Assembly (NCBI GenBank): GCA_029953675.1
Contig: JAMWBK010000007.1
Span: forward strand, 992,001 to 1,056,000
Reading direction: 5' to 3'
From: Rhodosorus marinus CCMP1338
Taxonomy: Eukaryota > Plantae > Rhodophyta
DNA length: 64,000 nucleotides
Below are positions 3,335 to 47,175 of this stretch, in pieces. The first letter of the stretch is position 1; each line of letters begins with the position of its first letter. The notes beneath the pieces were generated by a model. It was given only the letters and a program-made list of their open reading frames with translations. It was not told where the DNA came from and searched no databases. The translations under genes and the position numbers were made by a program.

Positions 3335-5969
3335 ATGGTGGAAAATGGGGATTTAGATGCAGACGCTTATGAGGTATGAGTCAATCACGCCCGCCAGCAT
3401 GGATTAAATTGATTTCACTGTTTTGGCTCCAGCGTGATTCTCACAGCAGCCTTCTTGTTTCTTGCGCTCTCGATCACTCCAACAGGGTGTGGATTACGTC
3501 GTCCTCAACGATGATGTTCTCACCAGTGTTTATAACGCGAGCACCGTACTGGCTGAAGGGAACGACCTTGAGAGGCTCGCCGTTTTATTTCAATTTCCGC
3601 AGTTTTTGGAGCACTGCCCGGCTGACACGATCAATATTATGATTCCCGAAATTTGTAGCAACGTTACGGGTTGGACAGAGAACGCGACTATGGCTTCGGC
3701 TGAGGTAACTTTTTATCCCCGCTTTGGTACATCTGTTTTCCTGGACCTGGTAGCGCGAGACTATGGTATTGATACTGTTCTACTTTCGTCTGATTAGGCC
3801 CTCTACTTCGTTATTGGCGTAGCAATACCGGACGACATAGCAAGTGCAATTTTGGACGTATCTCTGAAGATCCTGGACAAAATGGGACAGGGGGATATTT
3901 TTGACGCTTGGGGAGAGATTTTGTCCATGATCGTTGCACAAGTGAGCTCCAACGATGTTCATAGCAAGCTCATTCCGATGACTATTGAGCGCCTAGGTTC
4001 CAAGACCATTGATTCGAGGCGTCTTGCGGCGAGGTTGATTGGATCACTCGCCGACGTTTTATCATCTGAAGAAGTAGAGGACCTGTTCCTGAAGAGGGTC
4101 GTGGATCTCTGTGATGACAAGGACAGTTCTGTCCGGGCCATGATTGCGCAGTCCCTGGCCAGTGTTGGCGCCAAACTCCCGCTGAAACTTTGTGAGGAGC
4201 ATCTTTCCCCAAAATTGTGCTTTTTGACTGAGGACGACAGCGCTCGAGTACGAGCTGCAGCCGTCCGCGCCGTTGCGAAGATAGGCGATGCACACAAAGC
4301 TGAAGCTACCAACTCAAACATGTTCAAAACGGTAAGCCCCGTCCTCTCGATCTCAAGGAGGTCACCCTTCGGGAATCGTCCCTCCGGGAATCGAAACCTA
4401 TCGAAGGATCTGAAGGTGACAGGTACTAACAGTGCGCCACTGTCCATCTTTGTTCAGCTTCTTCTCTCGATGTTCATTGAAAAGTGCAAGGACGCAACTA
4501 TTACCGCGGCAACCGACCTCAGAACGGTGGACGATGATACGTATGTGATGCTGGAGATTTTCGCAGAGGTGTACGGATATTTTCTGATAGCGTTGAACCC
4601 TCTTTTTGAGGATGAGGAGACGTGGACGCTCACCCTGAACGGCCTGCGGAGAATGGTATCCTGCAACGGTCCAACAGTTCGACATTGGTGCGCGTTCAAC
4701 TTGCCCGCGGTAGCCACATGCTGTGGTGCTGATAGACCTGACCGCATAAAGGGCGTCCTGCACGCTTTGTCTACAGACACGGACGTTGAAACGAGAGCGA
4801 CTCTTGCGGCGGGAATACACGAGACTGCCCGTGTTGTCGGTGACACTGATTTGCGTGGAGAGGTGCTGGTGGCCGTCGGGGAACTGATGACTGACCAGAA
4901 TCCTCAGGTCCGCTTGAATGCCCTTACAAATTTTGCGGAGCTCTTGGAACTGCTTTCCGAGAAGGAACCTGCCGCTAGGAAGTTAGACCCTGTTTTCACG
5001 AACTTGGAAGCGCTGGCACAGGATTCATGGCGAACGCAAAAGGTTCTTGCGGAGCAACTGGACAAGGCTGCGTGCAACATACCGCAAGAAATGCTTTGTG
5101 AGTACGTCGCGCCTGTTCTTTTCCAGATGGCGAGGGAGAGCACCTACCTCGTTCGAAATGCTTCCATCGCTGCGGCAGTGCGCGTTCTGCGCTACATTTC
5201 AGCGATTCGACGGCGGGATGGCATCCACAACCATTTCATTAACGAGTGGGCTCAGGGAAAAGTTTACTGGACTAGACTTGCTTTCCTTGAGGGAGCTGAC
5301 GTGGCGCGCACCATTTTTAGTCGAAAGTTGTACAACAGCATGTTTGCTGAGTCGGCATTGAAAATGAGTGGCGATTCCGTCTCAAATGTTCGTCTCAGAC
5401 TCGTCAACCTGATGCAGAATTCTATTGCGGAGAGCAAGGACCTCAAACTGTACAGTGAAGCCCTCGCCAAGTTGGTCGAAGATTCGGACCCGGAGGTAAA
5501 AATCCGTTTGGCCCTTGGCCTTTGATTCCCTTGCTTCGTTTGCTGACTCTCGTGTCGGTTCTATTTTGCTTCTCAGGTGAAGGAGGCCGCTTTAAGTTGT
5601 CAGGAAGCTGTAGCCGGGTTCAAGGGTTTGTCACCGGAACAGGTGAAGGAAGACAAGCAAAGGGAGGAGGCGGAGGACAAATTCTTTGTTCTTCCAAAAG
5701 CGCAGGTCTCCAAGGGTGCGAGTCAGAAACCTGTAGTCCTTTCCACGCGAACCTCTTCGAAAAAGCAATTTGTGAAGAGCCAACCGCCGCTCAAGCCCCC
5801 AGTTCCATCCGATGTTGTGCTGTCCAAATTTTCAACTGGCGACCCGGAAGGTATGGCCGAGGGTAATGACTTGAACTCGGCGAATGGCGTCCGTGGGGAA
5901 AAGGACGAGGAAGAAACATTGGACAAGCGAAAAGGACTTTTGAGGAGGGCGTGCTGCTCTGTCTCATAA
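3335..5969 (+). CDS. PPP4R4: HEAT-repeat protein, PP4 regulatory subunit 4-like (PP2A A-subunit fold)
   Basis: ATG at 3335. GT-AG introns at 3374-3485, about 3706-3797, 4332-4457 and 5496-5576 join the ORFs in frame. The HEAT repeats include DxDxxVRxxxA motifs. WAQGKVYWTRLAFLE...DSVSNVRLRL resembles PPP4R4 (GKSYWNRLRFLD...DPVANVRMKL, recalled from memory). Ends TAA at 5967-5969. Confidence 0.75.
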
Positions 5970-31832: not shown

Positions 31833-32253
31833 CTGCGGATTTCTGTTACCTTGGAGGCCTGCGGAGTACGCCTTGTATTCTGAAATCACAATCCCCGCAG
31901 TCTGTGATGATCGAATGCCACCGTGAGCACAGCGAGTTTCCACATCGCGCGGCGCTGGGCGGTGCGAGCGCACTCTTGGGATTTCCAGGCAGTAAGACAT
32001 TCTACACACATGCTAACCGCATCGATCAGGGCTTGGACATCGTTTGTCCTGCTACTGGCGCAGGGAGCTGTAGCTGGGGACTTGTGTTACTTTGGAGGCC
32101 TGTGGAGTACATCTCGTACTCTGAAATCACTTGTGCGATGAAACTGCACCTTCCACCGTATCGGAAGAGCTCGCAAGCACCGTTGACACGGTGGCTCTCT
32201 TAGTACCATTGGTCTGGTTCAGCGTCTTGTTCCGGAGCCTCCTCCTGGACTGG
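31653..32253. repeat. Nested inverted duplication (arm A plus two antisense copies)
   Basis: 31715-31777 matches the reverse complement of 32078-32140 at 58/63 nt, including a 31-nt perfect run. The match extends to 31653-31809 versus 32047-32253 with indels. A second antisense copy lies at about 31836-31889. Confidence 0.92.
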
Positions 32254-32255
32254 CG

Positions 32256-33290
32256 GTAGTCACTTTTTAGTTTCTGTCTTCTTTGAGGGGATAGTTTGGA
32301 TGGGATCGACCAGGTAGAGAGCTTGGAAACGGGTTGAAACCGTACTAAGATGTTGCTGTGTCTCTAGCTGGTTGGGCTTCGTGTGAGGTTTGGTCGCTGT
32401 CGAGGACTGCCGTTAATATCTCTAGTCACTCTTTTAGTTTCCGTCTTTCTTGAGGGGACGGTTCGGATCGGATCGACTACGTAAAGAGCTTGGAAACGGT
32501 TTGAAACCGTCCTAGTATGTTGCTGCGTCTCTCGTTGGTTGGGCTCGTGGAAGGTTTGGTCGCCGTGGAGGTAGGCCGTTAATATCTATAGTCACTTTTT
32601 AGCTTCCGTCTTGCTTGAGGGGATGGTCTCGGTGGGATCGACTATGCATAGAGCTTGGAAATGGGTTGAAGCAGAAGCCGTGCTAGCATATTGCAGGGTC
32701 CCCTAGGGTCCCTTAGTCGGGCTTGGGGTTAATTTTGTGTTTGCAAATGAACGTAGAAGGATAAGGAGCGTGAGAGGGTGGACTTCGCTCGAGGTTTGGC
32801 CGGTGAGGAGGAAGATCGTCGGTACTAAAGTCACGTTTTAGTTTCTTAAGGGGATGGTTTGGGTGTAATTGACTAGGTAAAGAGCTCGAAAATAGGGTTG
32901 TTAAGCAGAAGCCGTCTAGTATATTGGGTCTCTTGCTCGTTGGGCTTGGGGATGCTTAGTGTGGTTGCAAATGAACGTAGAAGGATAAGGAGGATGTGAG
33001 GGTGGGCTTCGTGAGAGGTTTGGTCGGTGAGGAGGAAGGTCGTTGATATCTATACTCAGTTTCTAGTTTCTGTCTTTTTTTAAGGGGATGGGTTGGATGG
33101 GATCGACTAGTTAAAGAGCTTCTGAATGGGATTAAGCTAGTTAAAGAGCTTCTGAATGGGATTAAGCAGAAGCCGTACCAATATATAGCAGGGTCTCTTG
33201 TTGGTTGGGCTTGGGCATCTTTAGTGTAGTTTGTAAATGAACATCGAAGCATAGGGAGGTTGTGGGGGTGGGTTTTCGTGAGAGGTTTGG
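32256..33290. repeat. Degenerate tandem array, 5 copies
   Basis: The AGTCAC(T/G)TTTTAG(T/C)TTC anchor occurs at 32258, 32424, 32590, 32829 and about 33054 (spacings 166/166/239/225). There is a perfect internal 30-bp duplication at 33107-33166. Confidence 0.9.
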
Positions 33291-35937
33291 TCCCCTTTTG
33301 GGCTTTTTGGGGGTTGTGCGGATGATAAGGATATGGTTTTAGATTGGGCAGGAGGGGTATGCTGAACCGTTGGTAAGGTGTTCTGGTGTGTTGTGGGTTT
33401 GGAAACTGAAGGAGGTTTAGAGGTGTTTGCGCTGGCTGGGCTGTGGATTTGCTGGTGTTTGTCTTGTCTGGGAGAGAGATCGAGAGATTAGCGTTTGTTT
33501 GATCTTGTAAGGGACAAGGAAGAACGAGACGTTTTGGACTATTGGTCATCGAGTTGTGTTTGAGTTAGGAAGCAAGATGTAGTTGGGCAACATAGGCTGA
33601 TCTTCCGCGGGGAGATTGAGTGCTTCGGGCGCTTGATCTCTGCTCGCAAGATGAGCTTCTGTTGGGTGACTACATCACTTGCTTCCTTTCTTTGACGAGC
33701 TCGTTGCATCACGCTTTGGACGGACACTAGTAGCAGCAACGCGAATCTTGGAATCTTGATCTGGGCTGAGAAACGGGTGTATCTTATCCGCGCTCTCCCA
33801 TATGCTCAAGTTACAAGATAGTGACTAGATTTTATTCTATTAGTTTCTTATCTGGCCTTAGTCTTTCCAAGCCTGGCCGGACCCACGCTTTCTTCCGAGA
33901 ATGAGCGATTTTCTGTTCTTGGTCAAGAAGACCTGACGCTTGCGGGACAGCTCATCGGACTTGAGCAAGAAAGAGATGGTTGAGACGGTTTGCCACCAAA
34001 TCTTATCCGTCGCAAGAAAATTCCGTGAAGAATATGTCTGGACAAAGACGGACGAACCCTCTCCTTCAGCCTCCTTTTTTTGCTACGAGATTGGAGGCAA
34101 GCCGCAGTCTTCGAGGGCTTCAAAAATGAGACCTTCCGAGGATAAGGGTGATGAAAGTAACTTTTGCAAATCATGAGAGGAATCTTGCTATTTTCCTGTT
34201 CCTAAGATACCGCTCAAGGTCGCGAAGCACGAGCCACGTAGCTCGTTCTAAGCTCTCGGTTTTTGAACTGTTTGAGAACAAAATATCTGCTCCTTTTGTC
34301 CCGCTTTACACTTTCCACGCAAAGATGATTTTCTGTGGTTGTCTTTTCATCTTCGGTCAAAAGTGGAGATCTGCTGGGCACGTGTCAAGGCACCTGCCAA
34401 GGCACCTGTCAAGGCATGGAAAGGTACATAAGCGTATGATGGGTGAAATTGGTTGGGGGATGGTGGGGGTTGAGAAGAAAGGAGGGTGAACGATAGGTGA
34501 AGAGCTCAGCTGTGTATCATCTGAAATATTTTCTTGTCCTCATCGACAAGAAAATACTTTCGGTTTTTTTTTTGTGGCGGAGAACGGGTTCCTTAGATGA
34601 GAGAGCGAATTTAGCTTGCAGTCAAAAAACATATGCTTGATGTCCGAGCAAGCCCAAGGGAAGGATCTTGAAGCCCTTTATCTTTCTCGTGCTTACAAGC
34701 TTGTGCTCGTTGACCAAGGTTTTCCTTTTCTTTCTTTTTTTTGCCACTGAGCAAAGCAAAAAGGAAGAAAGGTGGAAATTCAGAATTTCGTTTTGAACTT
34801 TCGTGTTAGATGCAACCTTCGCGTTCCAGTTCTGCACGTGTCGGCAAAGTGGGCACGCATGAACGAATATCTCACGAGATCATGGAACCAATCATTTTTT
34901 CATCTTCAGTTCGAGAGGTGGGTGCTAGTCGACGTTTCTCAGTTCAAGGTCCACTCTCTACGTGGGCCCTTGAATTGTAGAGATGCCATTCAGACGACCC
35001 TGCTGTCGTACAAAGTCCATATCTCGTCATGTGTTTCTGGTTTCTGAGGGGTATTTTGCAATGTGGATGTACAAGAAACGAACTTTGTTGATGAACAAGA
35101 AAGCAACTTCTTGGATATCACAGAAGATCAGAATTCGGCTGAAAGGATGAAAGGAGACGAGAGGATTGCCGCGGCAAGTTTTGATACGTACACGTACACG
35201 TTCACACGGCCATGTTCGAGCATGAGGAAAATGATCTGATCCAGTCAAGATATTTCTTCGCTGTAGCTCCTTTCTCAAGTGAAAGTTTGCCGGATCGGTA
35301 GAGCACTAACGGTTTCTGGAAGAGGTTCAATTTACCACACTTGATATCTACTACGACGGGAAGTTATCAAACGGTGAGGGATTGACCTGCTCTGACAGCG
35401 TGGGTACTGGCCTGGCTTGAACGACGAAGTGGGGGAAAAGCTTTCTATCTGATTTAGAAATCGCCGAGGTTCTCCACGATGCAAGTTGTCGGACTCCGTA
35501 TCCCCGGGACAGAGCGAAAGGCTAGACCTTCGAAGCTTGAGTCCAGTTTTCTACGTTTTGATTTCGATGAAAGAACACACGATCAACCGCGTATCGTCTT
35601 CGAAACGGATTGAAGGACATCCCTGATCTAGCTCTCCAGTGAGTTGTGCCACGATATGACCGACGATTCTTCATCTTGTTGAAAATTTTTTGTACGACTA
35701 AGTCGAAACAGGATTATGCCAATCCCATTGAACCTAATATTTGAAACTGGCCGGACTATCTCACAAACTCTACTGCAGTACGTCAATGCATTGTTAAAGA
35801 TGGTTGATGCGGTTTCCGGTTGCTGCTGTTTAGAGTCGTTCCAAACGGCTTCCTTGAGTGACCGCGTGAAAGAAAAAGGGTCTGGTGCAGGAAACCCGGG
35901 AGGTTGAGTTCTGGCTGTAAGGAGTTGTGAGGAGAAG

Positions 35938-38900
35938 ATGTCATCAAGGACGGGCGAGGTCTCCAACCATCGTAGGGGGGGTCGCAGTACCCGTGGGAGG
36001 ACACGCGCAAGCAGGTGCTCCCGATTCTTAGATGATTTTCAAATGCCACTCCTGGACGTGAATCGAAGGAGGAAGTTCTTGGACGTCGTGGATGAACACT
36101 TAAGTAGTCGATCAGTGTCTGACGCAACTCGGGTGATCGAACAGTTGGCGACTGATGTAGGCCAGGAGCGGTTGGTGGAGGTGTTCAGCCATAGAGTTGC
36201 CGGTATCGTCTCGGACAGGAAGCTAGAGGAAGAGCTCAATATGTCAGTGATCAGGTTACTGGCACGTCCCGAAGTTGCCCAAAGTGTTGTTGCGTCGAAG
36301 ATCTACACAGCTTTTGCGCAGTTCGCTGTGAAGTTCTTTACCCAAGTTTTTGAAGAGGACGTCCTTTCTCGATTGGAAAACCATCCCGAGATGTTTGATG
36401 TATCGTCGCCATTGGGAAACAGGACTTTGACCTTTGGTCTCACGAGATTTGCAAGGAGAATTCTCCTCGCTTACAAGGCTTTCTATGAAGTACTCTACCG
36501 AGTCCCGGATATTGTGAGGCAGGACGTCCAAGCTTCTTTGAACTTGGTTGAGCTGATGTTCAAACCACACGAGGAGATCGTAGCTTGGAGCCAAGTGGAT
36601 TCCCTGGGGCTAAGCAACCTCACCGACCCTGCGGTTCGGCAGTACTTGGTATCGGCAGCGTCGCTGCTGACGAAGATACAACATATTGCTGAAGAGATCC
36701 ATGCTCAAGCGCTTATGGGAGAGACTGTTCAACGTGATTCGCTAAAGAGTGGCGATCGGTCAGATGAGAGCAGAGCTGGAGGAGAAATTCCCGCGCGAAA
36801 CGGACCAGGCGTTTTGTCTCTAAGCAAGAGCGCTCGTCATGACAACGACTTTGAGGATTATAAAAAAATTTCCGTTTTGCCAACTGAGATGGAGATATAC
36901 TCGAAGCTATGAGACTTCTTGCCGAGGGACGGCGTCGAGGGAAAAGCTTTTTGTGCGCCTGAAAACTTCCTGCCGCACGGGACACTGCGACTCTTCGACA
37001 AGCATTTTCGGCTACTGCGACATGATTTTCTGTGCCAAGTGCGTAACGCAGTGACTGCATTCGTGGGCTTCCTACAAGACAACCAGGTAAGTCAAACGGA
37101 ACGACGTGCGAAGATGAAGATGAATTGGGCTCAGCTTGAGAAGGAAGAGCGTATAGAAAACTTCAATGTTTATCACAATGTGCAAGTCATAGGCTGCGAA
37201 ATGTACAGACAGGGAGTCGGTTTTGAGATATGCTTCTCCTGCCCGATTCGGATAAGTCGACATCTAAAGTCGACGTCGACGCGTGAGGAGTTTTGGACTT
37301 CCCATAGCAACCTTCTGACCTTCGGCAACGTTGTTTGTATTGTGGTAGACGACGAGACCCACAAGCCTCGGCTGCTGGTATGCTCGATTGTCCGACGAGA
37401 CCCAAAGCACATGATGAACCCGGAGATGGGAGATGCTCGTTTGGGTGTGGCTCCAGTGGATGATGGCTCCAGCGCGGACTTCTTGGCGTCTTTGATAAAG
37501 TCAGCTGAAAAGCGAAGAATTTTTATGGTGGAGGTTCCTGGTCTCCTCTTCGAACCCTATAGATGCCTCCTGAATTACCTCCAGGAAACTGTACCAGGGG
37601 TAATGCCGTTTGCGGAAATTCTTGCTCCGAGTCCGAAAGATCAGGACCCAGTTGGAGTTTTCCACCCACCGGCGAGAGTCTGCAGGGTGGATGCTCCGGA
37701 GTTTACCTATTGCAAAAACTTTAGGTACAAGTTAGGGGATCTGCTTCATCCACCGCGGCGGCTTACATTCACTCCGAATAGCATGGACACGGAACACCGG
37801 TCCTCTGTTTGCAGAGAACTAGCTGATGGGTGCGACTTGGATGATGGGCAGCGTGAAGCTCTTCTCAACGTCCTTTCTCACAAAGTAGCGCTTGTGGAGG
37901 GTGAGATATTTGCTTTCGAATAGTGCTCGAAGGTCGTTACGAATCTAACTTGAGATCTTTCAAACCCTCCTCTTCCTTCAGGACCTCCCGGTACCGGAAA
38001 GACAAAACTAGGAGTGGACATTGTCCGCGTGCTCTTGGAAACGAAAGAAGCGCAGCCTCAGCTCCTGCAGGGCCCGATATTCTGCATCTGCTACACCAAT
38101 CATGCATTGGACCAGTTTTTGAATCATCTGCTGGAGAACAAGGTGACGGGCATTGTTCGAATTGGTGCACGGAGCAAGGATGAGAGGATTGGCAAACTCA
38201 ATCTTGAGACCTTGGTTGCGACTGCTGAGGATAGAATATTCAGAGGGAGGGAATTCTACCACAATAGAGAGAGACTAAAGCAACTAGAGACAGTGAACCA
38301 AAGTCTGCATGAAAAAATTATCGGCAGGAGAAGCTTGGACTTTGAAGACGTGCAAGAGCTTCTCCCCCCGGGCTGTTTAGAGGAGGTGGAGGTTCTCGAT
38401 CACGTGGAATGGAAGGACCATAATGAAATAACTGGACCAAGGGGACAAGAAGAGCTCACGCTGGGTTCTCGTGGTCCGTCGTTGACGCGTTTGTTTCATC
38501 ATTGGCGTCGATGTGAGGATATAACTGCCATGGAAAATACCCTGGTTGAACTTGAGAATCGCCTCAGGCGGGGTTCGGGAGTAGCGAACGGGACTTGGAG
38601 CGGGATCGAGAATTCTTTTGCGATCCTCGAGAACGAGACATCGGAGTCGAGTTCGGAGTCCGAGTCCGACATGAACGATGACCTCCTGGCGCAGATTGAA
38701 TCTTTGCGCGGAAGCATAAAGCGCCTCAAGAACAGGGACTCCGTGCGAAGTGCAGAGGAGATTATTTCTGTCGGCGAGAAATTCAAGCTGTTCGAGCTGT
38801 GCCAAGCGGAGAGGGCAACCTTGTACGCTTTCCTGGTGGAACAGATGCGGGGGCGATTAATTGCGGAGCTGAACATGGGTTTGGCTGAAGCGAATGAGTG

Positions 38901-41900
38901 TTATAATATGCAGAGAAACATGAATAATGAGCAGAGGAAGTATATCTTGCAGAATAGTCCGATAATAGCAGCGACGACAAGTGGTGCCGCAAAACACTGT
39001 CAGATGATTCTGGCGGCGCGACCGTTTGCCTTGATTTGCGAGGAGGCTGCCGAGGTGCTTGAAGTACATGTTCTGGCCTCGCTTAGTGCAAGCGTTCAGC
39101 ACATGATCCTGATCGGCGATCACCTGCAACTGAGGCCATTAGTTCAAACATACGACCTGACTATAGAAGGAGGGAAGGGCTATAGGCTGAACGAGTCGCT
39201 ATTTGAAAGACTGGTTAATCAGTATCCAGACCACTACCCTAGCTCGAAGCTTTTGGTTCAGAGGCGAATGAGGAAGGACGTATCAGACACGATACGCGAG
39301 ACTCTGTACCCGGAGCTGCTGGATGGAGAAAACACATTGGAATTCCCGGACGTGAGGGGAATGGGGAAGAATGTGTTCTTCCTTCACCATACGCATGCGG
39401 AGAACCAACACGATCGCATGAGCGCTTCATCGGACAGGAGCAAAACCAACTTGTTTGAGGTCGATCTAGTCGAGGCGCTTGTCCTATACCTCGTGAAGAA
39501 CGGGTACAACGGACAGAAGGATATTGCGGTCCTTACGCCGTACCTTGCTCAGCTCTTTTTGATAAAGAAAGCCCTCCAAAGGCGAATAGTCGTTACGCTC
39601 GCCGAAAAGGACATGGACCTTTTGGCAAGGGAGCGCCTCGACGAGGATCCGAGCCAGGGGGCTCAGGGTGTCTCTACGTACTTCACCAACGAATCCCTTT
39701 CACAAAGCGTGAGGGTCTCCACGGTGGACAACTTCCAGGGAGAGGAAGCTAACATCATTGTTCTGTCGCTTGTGCGCAACAGTGGCTCACCGGACGTTGT
39801 AGACAGGCCGATAGGATTTGTGCGCAATTCAAACAGGATCAACGTGATGTTGTCGAGAGCTAGGTATGGAATGTACATAATGGGCAACGCCTATCAGCTC
39901 GAGTTTCAGAGCAATATGTGGTCCAGAATACTGGCGACCCTGAAAGAAAAGGGCCTTCTCGGTGCGGCTTACCCCCTGACTTGTCATACACACAAGGACT
40001 ATCACGTGTTGGTAAAGTCAGCCGAAGAATTCTACCGCATCTCGCCCGACGGAGGATGTCCGAGGCCATGTGGGGTTCGCCTGCCATCATGCGGGCATAT
40101 CTGTCCCCTTACATGCCATGCATATGATGCTGAGCACAGGTTGACAAAATGCAACGCGATTTGTTTGAGACTTCGGGAAACGTGCGATCACTCGTGTCCA
40201 GCGAGATGCGGGGAAGTTTGTCCCCCGTGCCAAGTTTTCGTTGGGTCGTTGACGCTCAAGTGCGGTCACGAACTGTCACGAGCTCGGTGTTTTCAGAAGT
40301 TGGGAGTCGACTCAATTCAGTGCGTGGTTCCGGTGGGCGTGACGCTGCCATGCGGGCACGAGAAAACAGTCGAGTGTTCTATTCTCGAAGATGAGCACTT
40401 TTGTCAAAAGCAGTGTACGCACGTACTGGAGTGTGGGCATACTTGCGAGGCGGTTTGTGGTTCTTGCGCGAGAGCGAAAGAAGGCTTGAGACAACATCCA
40501 AAGTGCCGACGTGCGCGCGATCGACCACTGAATTGCGGGCACCTCTGCAATGTTGAATGCAACGTGCATGTCACCAAGGAGTCGGACGGACAGCAACGGA
40601 CACTATGTCCGCCTTGCAAGGCACTGTGTGTGAATGCGTGCGAACACTCCTCCTGCAACGCAGCGTGCAGTGTCGTTTGCGTCAGCTGTGCTGAACCTTG
40701 CGCTTGGAAGTGTCCACACAAGAATAGGAAATGTCCACTACCATGTGGTGCGCCCTGCTCCATGTTGCCCTGCGATTTTCGCTGCCCAGAAAGGCTACCG
40801 TGTGGACATAGGTGCCCGGGTTTGTGCGGCGAACCGTGCCCGGAATCCACCTTCTGCCATACCTGCGGGAATCAGTCTACGAAGAAGCTTTTGGTAGACT
40901 ATGTTTTGATGTCTAAGTACGAGGATATCAACCCCGACAAGGACCCAGTAGTTTTCTTAAACTGCGGCCATCCTATGACTATGGAGAGCATCGACAATCT
41001 CATGGAGATCGACAAGGTCTACGTGCGATCCCGAGTTTCGGCAGAGTTTGTCGATCTAGTACCATACAACGTGTCCAGCATTTTGTCAGAGAAGAGGCCC
41101 GTGTGCCCTTTATGCCGCACACCGATTCACGGCGTGCGTCGATATGGGCGAATTCTCAATCAGCACACGCTCAGCGCGATTATGAGGAACTTCAAGTACG
41201 AGTTCCTGCGCGTCAAGGAAAGTTTCGACTCAGCTGCAGATCACAGAGCCAGGCTTTTGGAGAAATACAGAGAGGAATTCAAATCCCTTGCTCAACGCAA
41301 GAGCAACGAAACCTTGAGAGAAGAGCGAAACGTTTCGGGCGGACGTACAAGCATAGACAGGTATCATTTGAACCTCTGCAATTCGGCAGTCAAGAAAGTC
41401 AACTCCGTCTTTCCAATGAGAACCATCGAACGTTTCTACAAACGGAGTCGCCACCCTCCAACCGAAAGAGTCTACCAAGCGAGCTTGGTCTACATGGAAA
41501 ATGACCTGCTCGATTCGGAATCGTGCGAAGCTCAGGTTGGCTTGGAGACACCACGTCCGGACTATGAGCTATGCATTTGGAGCGCCATGCAATATGCAGA
41601 GTTCCTGCACCAGCAGGCCGACGCGCTAGTGCTGATGACGAAATTGAAACCTGCTGGAATGGACGTGAACAAACTGATAGAAGTTGCTTTCATCGACCTT
41701 CTGCATGCTTACAAGTGGTACATGGACAAGGCACTCGTGGATGCGACCGCAGCCAAGTACTACAGACATGCGGCGAACACTCGTCTCGCAGTGGCGGGTT
41801 TGAACTATGCTGTGATGCAGTTAATTCAGCAGCACCAAGAAGTGGTTAGGAAGCTTGTGGCTGTTCGCCACCAAAACGCCATAGCTCCGAATACTACGAG

Positions 41901-42504
41901 AAACAGTTTTCGAGAATTCATTCTGACGCTGAAGGACTGGCTGGACTATGTTGGTCGTAAAGACAAGCGCGTAGTTGCTAAGGACTGTCAGAGGGTGCAT
42001 GACTTGCTCGTGACTACGAATTTGGACGAGGCTGTGTCTATCTGTCCCGATGGATACAAGCCGATCCTGGAAAAGGCCGTTGCTGAAGCAAGAAAGGAGT
42101 ATAGCCGCGAAAACACGGCAGAATACAAACTTGCTCTACGATTAGAAATTATCGAAGCCATGAAAGCGTCGAGTATTGGCCTAGGTACGTAGCCTCCAAC
42201 CCCACGTGGTTTACGACAGTTTCTAACCCAAAGTCCTCCACTCCACGCTGATCGGATATGTATGACCAGGAGTCCTTCATCATTGTCCAAGAGGCCATTT
42301 GGTAAGCAAGACCAGTAGTATTTCCGCAAGCGGTAGTCTCCTTGCAAGCAGGGTCTTTCGCTCATACAATTCTAATCGTATCTTTCGTAGTACTCAATCA
42401 TGAACTGTGGTGAGGCAAATCAAGCAGCCCATTGCGTCGAGTATGGATTGCCGATCGGGGGATCGAATTATGCCCTACTACCAGGGAACAGAAGGATAAC
42501 CTGA
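35938..42504 (+). CDS. ZNFX1: ZNFX1-like SF1B (UPF1-like) RNA helicase with NF-X1 zinc fingers, RING-like domain and RZ finger; one in-frame TGA at 36910-36912
   Basis: Exons 35938-37900, 37982-42184, 42270-42301 and 42391-42504 total 6312 nt. Motifs: RHDND...ISVLPT, RLLRHDF, EG|PPGTGKT (split by an 81-nt intron), CYTNHALDQFL, CEEAAEV, IGDHLQLRP, SLFERL, TVDNFQGEE, NRINVMLSRAR, a Cys/His NF-X1 array, CGH...CPLCR, and C-terminal CPRGHLYSIMNCG...IGG. Confidence 0.92.
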
Positions 42505-43122
42505 CCCTTCCAGTGGCCTACGAGTCAGCGGAGCACAGCCCAGACTTCTCACCCCGAATCCGCGCTTCCGGCAAGATAATCCGGTTCGTGTTATGTATCC
42601 TCTGAAAACCTAAAAACGGAATAGTCGGTTTTCAGTGTTGATGCGATCTCCCATCAGCAACACCCGTAAAGGCCACTAGTATATCGATCAGCAACACCGG
42701 TGCACAGTTTCGGTTTCAACTCGTTCCTAGCTGATCCAAGCTCTGGTTCCAGGCAAGCTTGTGCTGGGAAGTGGGTCTTCACATTTGAGTCAGGGGCCGA
42801 ATCACGGAAAGCCATTTGGCTCACGGAGGCTGCCCTACTCATCCGCCGATTCAACATCAGTCAAGCATCTCTGGGCACATTTGCACATCTCTTGCGCACT
42901 AAGTTATGAGCATTTGGTCAAGCCAGGCGATCCTCGTTGAGATGCCGAGTCTGTTCCGGTTCAGGGACCAAGTCAAAACGGCTTTTACAAAGTTCGATGG
43001 CCATGCTTCGAGCACCCAAATCCGAATAGCACGGGCGTTCTGCTGCTTGTGTGTGTGGATTAGTCGATTTGCCGAACGCTGACCACCCCATCCTCCGCGC
43101 AAACTCGAAAATACTGTAAAGA

Positions 43123-44983
43123 TTAGAATGGGTCCGCAACATCGTCTTCGTCATCGTTCGGTAGGTCATCATCAAAATTCAGCGCCCTAGCCCTGTACCG
43201 ACCACTTCCACGTTCGGAGCCGTCGTTCGAGTCTACCAGATCCCTCATCGACGTCTCCAATTTCTCGGCTGTCTGGAGGACGATATCATTCGTAGGATTC
43301 TCTAGTAGAGCCTGTTTGAGATGCTTCCATCCTTCCTCGAACTCTCGATGCTCCGTCAAGATATCCACGATCTCAACCCTAGCTCTTGAGACCGCCGCTC
43401 GCTGCCCCCGAGATCCGTCGCCTTTATATTTGTCTATATATTCTTCCAGAGTTTTGATGGCACTAGCAACTTCACCATCCTGTTCGTGCCTTCTAGCCAA
43501 CCCGATCACTGCCGGCACGCACTTTGGGGAGAGCTTGAGGGCCTTCTGAAATGCTGACATAGCTTTGCTTAGCCTCTCCAAGGAGATCATGACCTATAGA
43601 ATTCGCATCGGAGTTCGGTGTGTGAAGTAAATATCTGATTCAATCTCAACAGAACGCTGCAGTAAGCTCTGTACCTTGGCGTATACGCAGTAGGCGTAAG
43701 CCGAGTTAGGCGATCTCCGGATAGCATCTTTTGCTGTAAGATGTGCCTCGGAGATCGCACCGTTTCGCAATTGGATCTCAGCAAGGCTGATCTGCTGCGA
43801 TGGCCTCAACGAGATCGGATTCTGTAGCTTCCTTGCCTCCCTCTCACAGATTCTCTGAAGTTGTGCATCCAGTTTGGAGCCGTGATCTTTGTCATCCTGA
43901 AGCTTACAAAGCATAGCCGAAGATCTCCATGCGACCGGAGAGAACTCGTCTACCTCAACGAGCGAGGAACACAGAGAAGTCAGCTCGGATCCCTGTCCGT
44001 TCTCCAGGAGGAGCGAGCAGTAGTCATCCATGCTTCGCGTGGTCCACGAGTCCGCGGATCTCGCCATCTGGAACGCCCTGGAGCTTCGTTCAGCCGCTTC
44101 AAAATCGCTCAAACCTACGTACTGCTCATACTCTGCTTCAGCCAGCGTGATGGTCAGCGGTACACACTTTGGCGCCTTCAAGACCCCACGATGAAGCTCA
44201 AAACGAGCGCCTTCGATGTCTCCAGACGATATGGAAGCGATTCCTACAGAGACGCGGTGGCGCTTTGAATCTCTGAGAAAAACGCGGCCGAGCTTCTTCA
44301 AATCAGTTGTTCAATAGTCGTTCCTACCTCTGAAATAGTTCTGCATGGCCTCGACTATCACATCCGGGATTCCAACAGTTGAGCAGCTCCTCGTTATCTG
44401 ATCCAACGTTGAAGTTTCTAGTTCTCCGCCAGACTCCAATAGCAAAACGGCGGCTTCGATGGCCAGCGGGTTTCTCTTCAACGCGTTCTTGAAGCACGCT
44501 CTCGCCGCGCGAATCGCCGAGCTATCGAGGTACAGCTTTCCGAGCAAAATTTCCGCTTCAACGTCACATTCCGATCCTCGAATTGACTCCAACATCTTCA
44601 GAGCGCTCTCCTTTCTGCCGCTCGCGACGTAGGCCTTCGCAATCTTCTTCCGGACCCCCGCCACCTTGACCGATGGCTCCAAGCTCGACGCGGTAAGCGC
44701 CCGTTTGTACTTCTCAACCGCGCTCAAGTACTTGCCCTGAGCGTAGAGCGAATCACCAAGAATCTCTGCCGTCTCAAACACAGAAGACGCTGACAGACTT
44801 CCAGAGCCTCCCAGGAGGAGCCATCCGAAGAGTTCAGCGGAACCTGTTGTCACAGTTGCGAAAAGTATAAGCCGATTAGATCAGAGGTAGATCTGAATAG
44901 TAAACCCAAGATAGTCCCTTTAAAACGTCCTCACCATGAAGTCCTTGAGACGATAAATTTCTCAAACTCACAGATGGACCCAT
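43123..44983 (-). CDS. ANAPC7: Anaphase-promoting complex subunit 7 (TPR protein)
   Basis: ATG at 44983. Introns at 44934-44844, 44327-44244 and about 43674-43592. LGDSLYAQGKYLSAVEKYKRAL, ALKRNPLAIEAA and FQMARSADSWTTRSMDDYCSLL match APC7 TPRs as recalled. Acidic C-terminus. Confidence 0.8.
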
Positions 44984-47175
44984 TGTCTCTACTCCTTCCA
45001 CACCCATCACTAACCCCCTTCCTCACCAACCGATCCCAAATCCGATCAGCCGATCGGGTGAATGGATCTTAGCAAAACTTATCCGCAATCTTCCCTTGAA
45101 AACTCAACTAAAACGTCTTCGACAGCGTTCCCACCGATCTTCTTCCGTAACCCAACCCGCCGCGTTCAGAGATGGCTTGGAGGCAGAACAAAAAAAAACC
45201 GCGTTTGCATTTTTCAACAGCGCTCAAATACGTTCTCTCGACCCTTGCCGAATCAATCCCGCCTCCCTCCAAAACCCCTAGTGAACAGATCAGAGCAAGA
45301 CTATCTGCTTTGCTACCAGCAAAGGTTTAACAAAATATTCGACCAGCAGGTTCCGGACCTTGAAGAAACTCCACCCATACACGTCAACGTTCTCTGATTT
45401 CAGTCTGTTGACCAGTGGCTCTTCAATCGGCTTGTTTTACTCCTTAATCAGTTCCGGTCCTCCCCCTCGGACTTGATGTAGTGAATAGATGAGAATAGAC
45501 TATCCACCTTCCTGAAAGACTACGTGCAAAACATAGACGAGAAGAAACAGATGCTTGCGGGATTGGAAGAGGTCCACCTGCACGTCAAAGGTTGCGCAGT
45601 TCTGTTTGTTGATCAGTCGCTTTGTTTTGGTACCGCAAAGCAGTTCCGCTCCCGCCTCCGGTCGCCGTTTCAATCCGCGACTATCCATAGAAACCTGATT
45701 TAGTCGATCTGTTAATCCCGTGTGTCTAGTGAAATACAATTTTCTCACCCCTAAACGGAGATCCTTCTCTTTGCTTTCTAATGAAAAGATGGAGCGCTTC
45801 CCTTCGCAACTAAGCTCTTCTGCTTTACTCAGGTCTCTATTCTAATCCGCCGCCCACATCAACCACTGATCAATTTACGTTCAATTCCGCCACCATTCGA
45901 TGCGACATTCAAAAAAAAACCTCTTCTCGCTCCGTTGAATAGCTCAATACTGCACCTAACACTTTTGAAGTGGAGGCTTTCTTCAAGCTCAGGAGAACTT
46001 CGTGTAGCTCAATGAAGTGAACGGCTACAAGCTCGCGGGTCTCAAAGAAAAGAAGACCCCGTGTGCTCCCCCGCATCTATGCTGGGTTTCAGTTGAGTAG
46101 CTTCGGAAGAGACAGTGGTCCCTGCCGCCACGCATTCGGCTAGTAATCAGTTCGCACCTCTCAATATACCTTGGAGGCACGGATTTCAGCGCAAGCGAGA
46201 TTCTACATGCCGTACTGTCTAACTGAAGATGGTGAAGGTGTTTTAATCAGCAAGAACTGCTGGAAAAACTAATTGCCGTGTGGTGGTAGATCCTGATCCC
46301 AGTAGCGAAAGTCGGTAAAAGCACCTCTTCCACAATTTGACTTCCTTGACCCCTTGGATGAGAGCAATCGGTTATCGACCGTGTGAGGAGTCCTATACAA
46401 GTTGTCTTCAAGCGTAGAAGGTTGTTGTAAACCTCTTCATCGCAAATCCCGTCCCACGAGCTGAGAACTGCCGATGGACGAAGATGCGACAATGTACGTA
46501 TTGGCTTGCCGGCTACTTCCGGTGCTCACCGCTTTCCATGCCGCAGCCCCGCAACCGCACGGCCATCATGTTTGTTTTTTCCTGATCTACCTCCCGGTTG
46601 CATCTCTGCTGAATACATCCTCCGTGGCCTCGCACATCAAGCTCCATGATAGGGCATTGAGAAATCTAATGTTCCCTCTTGCTTTTCAGCAATGATAATT
46701 TCAGTCCGGAGATTTGCAGGTGTTCCTCGTCTGCTATGGCTTGCTCGAGGCAAGGCTTCGAAAATGTTCTCCACAAACTTAGTGGGACTTTCTAATCCAA
46801 TCTGCTGATCTGTTTGTTCCAAAGGCCTCAACGTCCTCTGCTCCTCAAGCGAGGACGAGAATTCCTGCACGGCTGGATTCATAAAACAGTCTGCGATTGG
46901 ATGCCTGGAGAAGTTCAAGGCGCCTTCAGCTTTGACCAAGAGGATCTAGTGCTGATCAGACAAGCATCTCTCTCAACGAAGGCATTGTATTGCGCGAGGT
47001 CAACATGATTAATTTCCCCTTCCCACTGGTCTTCTTCGCTTCTTGCGTCTCGGAATGCCCGTTTCAGTGTTCGGAAGAGTCCTTAAACTCGCTCCGACTA
47101 GGTTCGCAGCAAATAGACCATGTTAGCATCAGCAAGCAGATAAGTAAAAGCGAGGACAACAGTCCGCAGCGAATG

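Follow-up and report, generated by a model that had tools for sequence, protein, structure and literature searches.

Does the single in-frame TGA in an otherwise open ZNFX1-like gene of the red alga Rhodosorus marinus CCMP1338 mark a gene that has recently been lost, a stop that the cell circumvents, or an error in the assembly? We analysed this gene within a 64,000-nucleotide stretch of the genome ("the window"), which matches assembly GCA_029953675.1 without a difference; positions given below are those of the window, and features lie on the plus strand unless stated otherwise.

A ZNFX1-like gene interrupted at codon 325

The stop is codon 325, at 36910-36912, in the sequence …TCG AAG CTA TGA GAC TTC TTG CCG…. 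The initial annotation had described two open reading frames, 35938-36912 and 36919-37923, that share a frame and are parted only by this TGA, which takes up one aligned codon. Both the coordinates and an alignment to 91 RHDND-containing ZNFX1-like proteins bear out that description: the alignment is collinear across the stop, and the TGA occupies exactly one column. Since homology is collinear across the TGA, we are dealing with one gene carrying an interrupting stop, not with two chance reading frames. The stop lies inside the conserved block RHDND…VLPT.EI…FLP…FRLLRHDF (36835-37029), though its own column is variable, with Q in 17 of the 91 homologues, P in 15, A in 13 and other residues in the remainder; W and C occur in none. 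The first in-frame ATG past the stop is codon 393 (37114-37116, MKMNW), which would start any N-terminally truncated product; in a related Rhodosorus, the TransDecoder ORFs P0124-P0127 start at the homologous Met. An antisense ORF at 36713-37060 has no Pfam match and was taken as spurious.

Exon and intron limits were derived from the cDNA of an orthologous Rhodosorus transcript (L001) together with GT-AG boundaries. Exon 1 (35938-37900) encodes the N-terminal region, the RHDND block and the ZNFX1 domain, as far as VALVEG. It is followed by an 81-nt intron (37901-37981, GTGAGA…CAG) that is present in neither L001 nor P0005, both of which read VALVEGPPGTGKT. Exon 2 (37982-42184) contributes the P-loop, the SF1 helicase core (AAA_11/AAA_12), a Cys/His-rich finger region and a C-terminal helical region, assigned by Pfam and homology. 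Intron 2 (42185-42269, 85 nt, GTACGT…CAG) is retained in L001 and spliced in the MMETSP isoform P0126, and intron 3 (42302-42390, 89 nt, GTAAGC…TAG) is not in L001. Between them, exon 3 (42270-42301) encodes the start of the RZ finger (GVLHHCPRGHL), and exon 4 (42391-42504) encodes the remainder of the finger and ends in the terminal TGA, both being placed by a PF20173 match on the spliced peptide. The resulting four-exon coding sequence of 2104 codons, counting the internal and the terminal TGA, has no further stop and no frameshift, just as the initial annotation had held. Global reassignment of TGA, which that annotation had dismissed on the grounds that TGA ends at least six neighbouring genes, is indeed excluded; the count that we could verify is four of the six annotated genes in the surrounding 26 kb (the ZNFX1-like gene itself and three of its five neighbours). 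The neighbouring TPR gene at first also seemed to contain stops in frame; these were due to ordinary introns, of which L001 retains two, and reflect no genome-wide oddity.

The assignment to the ZNFX1 family, also made initially together with the description of the conserved block, was correct. The ZNFX1 domain (PF25396) scores 30.8 bits against a cut-off of 27 at about 37150-37416; the helicase core matches AAA_12 (124.8 bits, 4.3e-36) and AAA_11 (45.9 bits, 7.8e-12), with the GPPGTGKT P-loop straddling intron 1; and the spliced C-terminus matches the RZ finger PF20173 with 51.1 bits (62.1 bits in the relative). Pfam zf-NF-X1 gave no match at E<=0.01, nor at E<=1 on the residues encoded by 40300-41400; the translation has repeated CGH.C…C motifs there, and the region aligns with family members. 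The NCG Cys of the RZ finger is kept in the window, and both Rhodosorus strains have an RZ finger without the conserved His after IGG... By its domain content the gene is a predicted ZNFX1-like SF1 RNA helicase with Cys-rich fingers and an RZ finger, and it looks single-copy. Its nearest non-Rhodosorus proteins are fungal and oomycete NFX1-type/RZ-type helicases, at 33-41% identity. The same collinear architecture is found in human ZNFX1, in C. elegans ZNFX-1 and in the fungal and oomycete proteins named "NF-X1 finger and helicase domain" or "RZ-type domain-containing": the RHDND…LPT…FRLLRED block with PF25396, a UPF1-like SF1 helicase, a Cys/His-rich finger array and a C-terminal RZ finger. 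The Rhodosorus gene differs from them in the stop at codon 325, in the absent RZ His and in the absence from the window of one C-x-x-C cysteine. Human ZNFX1 is an RNA helicase in which the catalytic Cys of the RZ domain gives E3 ubiquitin-ligase activity (bioRxiv 10.1101/2025.09.05.674436); we found no literature linking ZNFX1 with red algae. A word-index search with a 655-aa query spanning the stop was unreliable for this region, returning three distant matches and missing P0004, P0005 and P0128, so the family picture given here comes from the other searches. Exact matches for 11 plausible ORF products of the window were absent from a collection of 15 billion proteins. Pattern scans of JGI metagenome contigs, at the protein and at the DNA level, gave no match to the locus, nor to L001, so these transcriptomes are not part of that collection. 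The region upstream of the gene (32.2-35.9 kb) is conserved, and comparison with L001 revealed no conserved ORF in it.

The public model of this gene, NDN08_004501, conceals the stop. Mapping of the P0004 sequence by tblastn showed that the model cuts out 36760-37347, a stretch holding both the TGA and the conserved block, by means of two predicted introns and an 11-codon mini-exon (37053-37085) in another frame. The annotation was produced with BRAKER 2.1.5 (PMC10250338), and the related transcript L001 is unspliced across the region. AUGUSTUS/BRAKER does not allow a stop within a coding sequence; hence, the public model makes up introns, and the conserved block is lost. We conclude that the introns of NDN08_004501 around the stop are an annotation artefact. 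The public protein KAJ8903393.1 is thus artefactual, lacking the conserved N-terminal block of the family and concealing the premature stop, and for this reason is unsuitable as it stands for comparing algal ZNFX1/RZ-finger immunity proteins.

Age and likely origin of the stop

Two related Rhodosorus transcriptome sequences have Gln in place of the stop: the orthologous codon of L001 is CAA (3931-3933), and a third sequence, P0129, likewise encodes Gln. Conservation of the stop in orthologues, which had been raised initially as a possibility to check, was therefore not found. In comparison with the 75%-identical orthologue, dN/dS is about 0.38 both upstream and downstream; the NG86 method gives omega values of 0.376 upstream and 0.387 downstream, with 0.076 for the 33 codons directly after the stop, at dS of about 0.39, and the helicase core has values of 0.12-0.23. 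Both the part of the gene before the stop and the part after it have been subject to purifying selection in the past. Under neutral drift, about 77-104 nonsense mutations would be expected at that divergence, and one is observed; hence, the lesion must be recent, spanning no more than a few percent of the divergence. In a three-way comparison, the codons past the stop showed no acceleration peculiar to the window, which fits a very young lesion and, equally well, a sequencing error or continued translation.

Two further changes are specific to the window lineage. Codon 1500 in the Cys-rich finger region (40516-40518) is CGC, giving C1500R at a position that is Cys in 99% of homologues and in L001, and codon 2084 (42442-42444) is TAT, giving C2084Y at the second Cys of the RZ-finger C-x-x-C, which is Cys in 90% of homologues and in L001. 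Overall, 21 lineage-specific changes at conserved columns fall in the window and 9 in the relative. The two lost cysteines and the excess of changes are compatible with relaxed constraint.

We consider the TGA to be most likely a recent nonsense mutation of the CCMP1338 lineage, which would make the gene a very young unitary pseudogene or null allele. A putative disabling lesion that is absent from orthologues is combined here with the signature of past purifying selection, the pair of properties by which a unitary pseudogene is recognised. The ancestral codon would have been Gln (CAA or CAG), two substitutions away from TGA, and the most plausible order is a change of CAA to CGA (Arg, tolerable at this variable column) followed by one of CGA to TGA. 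Hypermutability of CpG as the driver of that second step is unsupported, the observed/expected ratio of CpG being 0.94. On a full-length mRNA, translation should end after 324 residues, before the ZNFX1 domain, the helicase and the E3-type RZ finger, and the transcript would be a target of nonsense-mediated decay, an intron lying about 1 kb downstream of the stop. The protein output would then be, at most, an N-terminal fragment with trace amounts of product from readthrough or re-initiation. We infer both the loss of function and the correctness of the TGA base call. The situation resembles that of unitary pseudogenes, or segregating null alleles of immune-type genes, that ab initio predictors have masked, which likewise present a single disabling substitution in a constrained ORF and spurious introns; unlike the usual cases, it is accompanied by independent lesions, no more than 85 codons from the stop, in two related sequences.

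If the base call were wrong, the true CCMP1338 codon would be a sense codon, such as CGA or TGG, and the gene would be intact. The source assembly is based on Nanopore (ONT) reads, the rest of the 2104-codon coding sequence is intact and constraint downstream of the stop is not distinguishable from that upstream, all of which speaks for such an error. However, the assembly received three rounds of Pilon polishing with Illumina reads (PMC10250338), and residual ONT errors are mainly indels, of which there are none in the 6.3-kb coding sequence or in the neighbouring TPR gene; since those 6.3 kb are free of indels and of a second stop, local consensus quality looks good. Moreover, two conserved cysteines have been lost in the window lineage, and the same gene is disabled in both relatives, so a real lesion here would be unsurprising. 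We therefore regard a consensus or assembly error as unlikely, if the least so of the alternatives to a recent nonsense mutation. Among the explanations offered in the initial annotation, the evidence thus favours the two mundane ones, a nonsense allele of very recent date and an error in the consensus.

Readthrough, recoding and splicing

Programmed readthrough of the stop would yield a short product of 324 aa and a rare full-length helicase. UGA is the leakiest of the stop codons, the ORF after it is intact, and the variability of the stop column means that any inserted residue would be tolerable. Nevertheless, the stop is conserved in neither relative, and the GAC at positions +4 to +6 differs, to our knowledge, from every context known to stimulate readthrough, UGA-CUAG and UGA-CGG/CUA among them. 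Folding of 36910-37010 against shuffled sequence indicated no downstream RNA structure beyond chance (z = +0.35), and an Rfam search at E<=5 across the gene and its 3' flank (35500-43200) found neither a SECIS nor any other element. The effect of stop-codon context has been discussed elsewhere (bioRxiv 10.1101/2021.04.18.440353). Genes with programmed UGA readthrough, namely the animal UGA-CUAG class and fungal peroxisomal isoforms, likewise have an in-frame UGA followed by a long, open and conserved frame, but their orthologues share the stop together with its 3' context, whereas the Rhodosorus stop is confined to one lineage and is followed by GAC. Readthrough or recoding, as first proposed for this locus, is on these results very improbable.

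Recoding at the level of RNA or decoding could take the form of A-to-I editing of UGA to UGG or of selenocysteine insertion, and we give it hardly any credence. UGA is the selenocysteine codon, and we know of no mRNA A-to-I editing in red algae. Neither Trp nor Cys appears at the column in any of the 91 homologues, the relatives encode Gln, and the gene and 3' flank contain no SECIS match; the suggested repair of TGA to TGG would thus restore a residue without precedent at this site. Restorative editing of premature stops is known in filamentous ascomycetes (PMC10776026, PMC11156358), and filamentous fungi have the only known system of this kind, which strongly favours U at -1, that is, UAG and UAA (PMC11156358); at the Rhodosorus stop the A is preceded by G. 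The edited "pseudogenes" of Fusarium and Neurospora are similar in having a genomic premature stop within an intact conserved ORF (PMC10776026). In those fungi, however, the edited codons are UAG or UAA, in which U stands at -1; they often lie in hairpin loops, and the edit brings back Trp (PMC11156358). The Rhodosorus stop, by contrast, is a UGA that gave no sign of a hairpin, at a column where Trp was never ancestral, and the host is a red alga, in which no such system has been described.

Splicing offers no better escape. It had been claimed that no GT donor could remove the stop without deleting RHDND; in fact, a single GT is present after RHDND and ahead of the stop (GTTTTG at 36874), and an in-frame removal of 66 nt (36874-36939) is formally possible. 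We rejected it, as it would delete the LPT..EI…FLP motifs and use non-consensus splice sites. The related transcript L001 is unspliced there, so that cryptic splicing around the stop, likewise raised at the outset, was not observed in it.

Lesions in related Rhodosorus sequences

Each relative has a frameshift of its own near the position of the stop. In L001, four bases of codons 358-359, corresponding to 37011-37014 of the window, are absent, and a truncated ORF of 358 aa (P0128) is on record from the JGI and MMETSP assemblies alike. In P0129, from the third Rhodosorus transcript (Transcript_6683), the frame shifts after codon 409; this lesion was deduced from the protein sequence alone and is seen in a fragment, and the transcript may come from the same MMETSP sample as L001. 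Transcript_6683 appears to hold further lesions, as a plain pseudogene would. Three different lesions in three sequences thus fall within 85 codons of a 2103-codon gene, for which simulated random placement gave P of about 0.005; with only the two fully observed genes, the simulated value is P = 0.03. The clustering hints that something beyond random decay may be at work, and the locus is evidently prone to loss in Rhodosorus.

One process that could concentrate lesions in this way is the separation of the N-terminal ~320-410 codons from the helicase body, leaving a short N-terminal protein and an N-terminally truncated helicase started from Met393, from Met422 or through an internal promoter, so that lesions in the N-terminal zone would be tolerated or even selected. 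It would account for the position of the TGA at codon 325, the 4-nt deletion at 358-359 and the frameshift after 409, for the roughly 1,740 downstream codons that are still open (omega 0.39; helicase core 0.12-0.23), and for the four of four Trinity isoforms of the relative whose ORFs begin at the conserved MK[MI]NW Met. Against it, the stretch between the lesions and the candidate starts is among the best conserved at protein level (omega 0.076-0.23), and hence belonged to the translated protein until a short time ago; the P0129 frameshift falls downstream of Met393; and eukaryotic re-initiation after an ORF of 324 codons is very inefficient. In addition, the third lesion was ascertained only within the visible fragment, the coincidence of two lesions has P = 0.15 once any of the first 420 codons may be hit without harm, and the further lesions apparent in Transcript_6683 look like those of a plain pseudogene. 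Such uncoupling therefore seems improbable to us. Rather unlikely, too, is the broader proposition that independent hits between codons 325 and 410 in three Rhodosorus lineages reflect either selection, acting convergently, for a shortened or lost immunity-type helicase, as might happen in clonal cultures kept for a long time, or a gene in the course of splitting in two; the split gene would produce an N-terminal protein of 320 aa separately from a helicase/E3 body with an internal start.

Under the reading that we prefer, a recent nonsense mutation, and if the stop is real, the only close ZNFX1-like gene that we saw in the species would be naturally null, or nearly so, in CCMP1338, a strain that could then help to ask what this ancient RNA helicase/E3 does outside animals. 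The independent frameshifts in two relatives suggest that cultured Rhodosorus can do without the gene, or even pays a cost for it, and its dispensability is a small, testable point on the turnover of immune-type genes in algae.

An internal TGA in a ZNFX1-like helicase gene

ORFs 35938-36912 and 36919-37923 share a reading frame and are interrupted by a TGA at 36910-36912 (…TAC TCG AAG CTA TGA GAC TTC TTG CCG…). Homologues align straight across the interruption, confirming the in-frame stop that the initial annotation had described. The window is identical at every base to contig JAMWBK010000007.1 of GCA_029953675.1, which represents R. marinus CCMP1338, a red alga. For that assembly, Nanopore reads were joined with NextDenovo, the result went through three rounds of Pilon polishing with Illumina reads, and BRAKER 2.1.5 supplied the annotation (PMC10250338).

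We derived the gene structure by comparison with L001, an 11.8-kb transcript-derived contig from a related Rhodosorus (JGI sample 3300017118) whose ORFs are found under MMETSP Trinity transcripts as well. L001 is collinear with window positions 33144-45377, minus three short GT-AG segments. The gene has four exons (35938-37900, 37982-42184, 42270-42301 and 42391-42504, the last ending in TGA), separated by introns of 81 nt (GT-AG, missing from L001), 85 nt and 89 nt. With the internal TGA at codon 325 and the final TGA included, the CDS runs to 2104 codons. Matches to the Pfam domains ZNFX1, AAA_11 and AAA_12, with an RZ finger on the spliced C-terminus, show that the gene was correctly assigned to the ZNFX1-like family. 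A 1392-aa C-terminal ORF is 100% identical to the public protein NDN08_004501 (KAJ8903393.1); its next best match is P0005, encoded by L001 (75% identity), followed by fungal/oomycete 'RZ-type / NFX1-type' helicases (33-41%). For the whole gene, the closest homologues outside Rhodosorus are from Mucoromycota/Glomeromycota fungi and oomycetes (33-41% identity), and none of the top 120 matches is from another red alga, a pattern that biased sampling or patchy survival of the family among red algae might explain. Both Rhodosorus RZ fingers (window ~42391-42501) have the putative catalytic NCG cysteine and lack the His after IGG.. (IGGSNY in the window, IGGTGA in L001) that is, by spacing, the counterpart of the general-base residue His1881 in human ZNFX1.

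The public model, which covers 36043-42504, begins at Met36, leaves the frame after …SLKSGDR (36759) and rejoins it at 37348. The intervening sequence (36760-37347) is skipped except for a mini-exon at 37053-37085 that encodes 11 residues in another frame and ends at a fortuitous GTAAGT. Such a skip is an annotation artefact, typical of how an ab initio predictor responds to an in-frame stop; it removes the TGA, and with it the RHDND block and some of the ZNFX1 domain, which leaves the deposited protein without the conserved N-terminal block. The model also treats ~37725-37813 as intron; in transcripts of the relative this stretch is coding.

The 3.7 kb upstream of the gene (32200-35900) carry no annotation and match the transcribed 5' portion of L001 at 68-80% identity, with no ORF conserved between the two on either strand; this stretch includes a 167-bp tandem repeat (2.5 copies, 32257-32670). 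Candidate interpretations are a long 5' UTR, a non-coding RNA and a decayed gene. Downstream, a TPR gene on the minus strand (43123-45007; L001 9572-11514) contains in-frame stops that are merely apparent, falling in ordinary introns of ~80 nt. Two of the three TPR introns are retained in L001, which is thus a mix of spliced and unspliced RNA. Elsewhere in the window, the strong GC skew of the 2-4 kb bin (0.54) is due to a purine-rich (AG)n-type low-complexity tract at 2285-2811.

Origin of the stop codon

In an alignment of 91 retrieved homologues with an exact RHDND motif, the stop occupies one column of the conserved block RHDND…(I/V)LPT..EI.S….(F/Y)LP…FRLLR(E/H)D. The column itself is variable (Q 17, P 15, A 13, T, E and D 7 each, and others); Arg occurs in five homologues, and neither Trp nor Cys in any of the 91. 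It had been proposed that no canonical GT donor could remove the stop without deleting RHDND. A single GT does lie between the two (36874, GTTTTG), but its use would lose the LPT..EI…FLP motifs, and the L001 transcript is unspliced there.

The stop is not conserved in relatives. The homologous L001 codon is CAA (3931-3933: gag cta CAA gac ttc ttg), and P0129, an ORF from a third Rhodosorus sequence (MMETSP Transcript_6683) that is 80% identical to the N-terminal part of the window protein, reads …EEIYSKLQDFLPRDG… across the site, also with Gln. A three-way comparison groups the window with P0129, L001 being the more distant (15 changes unique to the window, 18 to P0129 and 32 to L001), which places the origin of the TGA on the terminal branch to CCMP1338. 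CAA and TGA differ at two positions, and the simplest path would be CAA to CGA to TGA, Arg being found at this column in homologues. CpG is not depleted (observed/expected 0.94).

Programmed readthrough or recoding, as initially proposed, is not supported: the stop is unshared; an Rfam scan of 35500-43200 (E<=5) found no SECIS, its three hits all being chance matches below threshold; and the 101 nt that start with the stop show no more structure than shuffled controls (z = +0.35). To our knowledge, GAC 3' of the stop is none of the known readthrough contexts. TGA terminates this gene as well as three of its five annotated neighbours, so global codon reassignment is excluded, as previously argued. 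Editing of TGA to TGG is likewise unsupported: fungal 'restorative' A-to-I editing favours U at -1, i.e. UAG/UAA, and yields Trp (PMC11156358, PMC10776026), whereas no homologue has Trp at the Rhodosorus stop column.

Selection and age of the lesion

Nei-Gojobori comparison of the window gene with L001 (overall dS ~0.39) gave similar dN/dS before the stop (0.376, 314 codons) and over the remainder of the gene (0.387, 1738 codons), with 0.076 in the 33 codons directly after the stop. Values were 0.12-0.23 in the helicase core and 0.7-0.9 in the C-terminal region, and 0.165 for the TPR neighbour. Neutral drift across the full window-L001 distance would be expected to produce ~77-104 nonsense substitutions, against one observed; the frame was therefore protected for almost all of this divergence, and the lesion is either young or not real. 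The latter reading, an uncorrected consensus error in the polished assembly, we consider unlikely. There are weak hints that constraint may be relaxed in the window lineage, which has 21 lineage-specific changes at columns conserved at >=50%, versus nine in L001. These hints include two highly conserved cysteines that L001 keeps and that are replaced only in the window: C1500R (40516-40518) in the Cys-rich finger array, and C2084Y (42442-42444), which affects the second cysteine of C-x-x-C in the RZ finger.

Separate lesions in the relatives

Both relatives are also broken near the window's stop, each in its own way. L001 has a 4-nt deletion at 4031/4032 (window 37011-37014, codons 358-359, within FRLLRHDF), a frameshift 33 codons downstream of the TGA position that splits the gene into a 358-aa ORF (P0128), recorded from both JGI and MMETSP assemblies, and an ORF of 1740+ aa that is still open. 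P0129 covers window codons ~152-409 and follows the window's frame to …EKEERAGNF (codon 409), beyond which, as judged from the protein sequence alone, its residues (…ESVLI*) agree with the +1 reading frame of both the window and L001. P0130, from the same transcript, spans codons ~530-654, starting at the Met530 equivalent and entering retained intron 1; at least one further lesion before that Met is implied if the intervening Mets are conserved. Transcript_6683 thus resembles a multiply broken copy. L001 and Transcript_6683 may come from different strains or may be paralogues within one strain.

Random placement would put three lesions inside an 85-codon stretch of the 2103 with a probability of ~0.005, the third having been ascertained within a fragment only; counting just the two genes observed in full, the probability is ~0.03, rising to 0.15 if tolerance of lesions is confined to the first 420 codons. 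ORFs in all four Trinity isoforms begin at the first Met past the L001 frameshift. A functional split of the gene with internal initiation is the most interesting reading left, and a quite improbable one. The initial suggestion of a very recent nonsense allele is favoured by the Gln in relatives and the single stop: the TGA is probably a nonsense mutation that the CCMP1338 lineage acquired recently, and the gene it hits seems to be readily lost among Rhodosorus strains.
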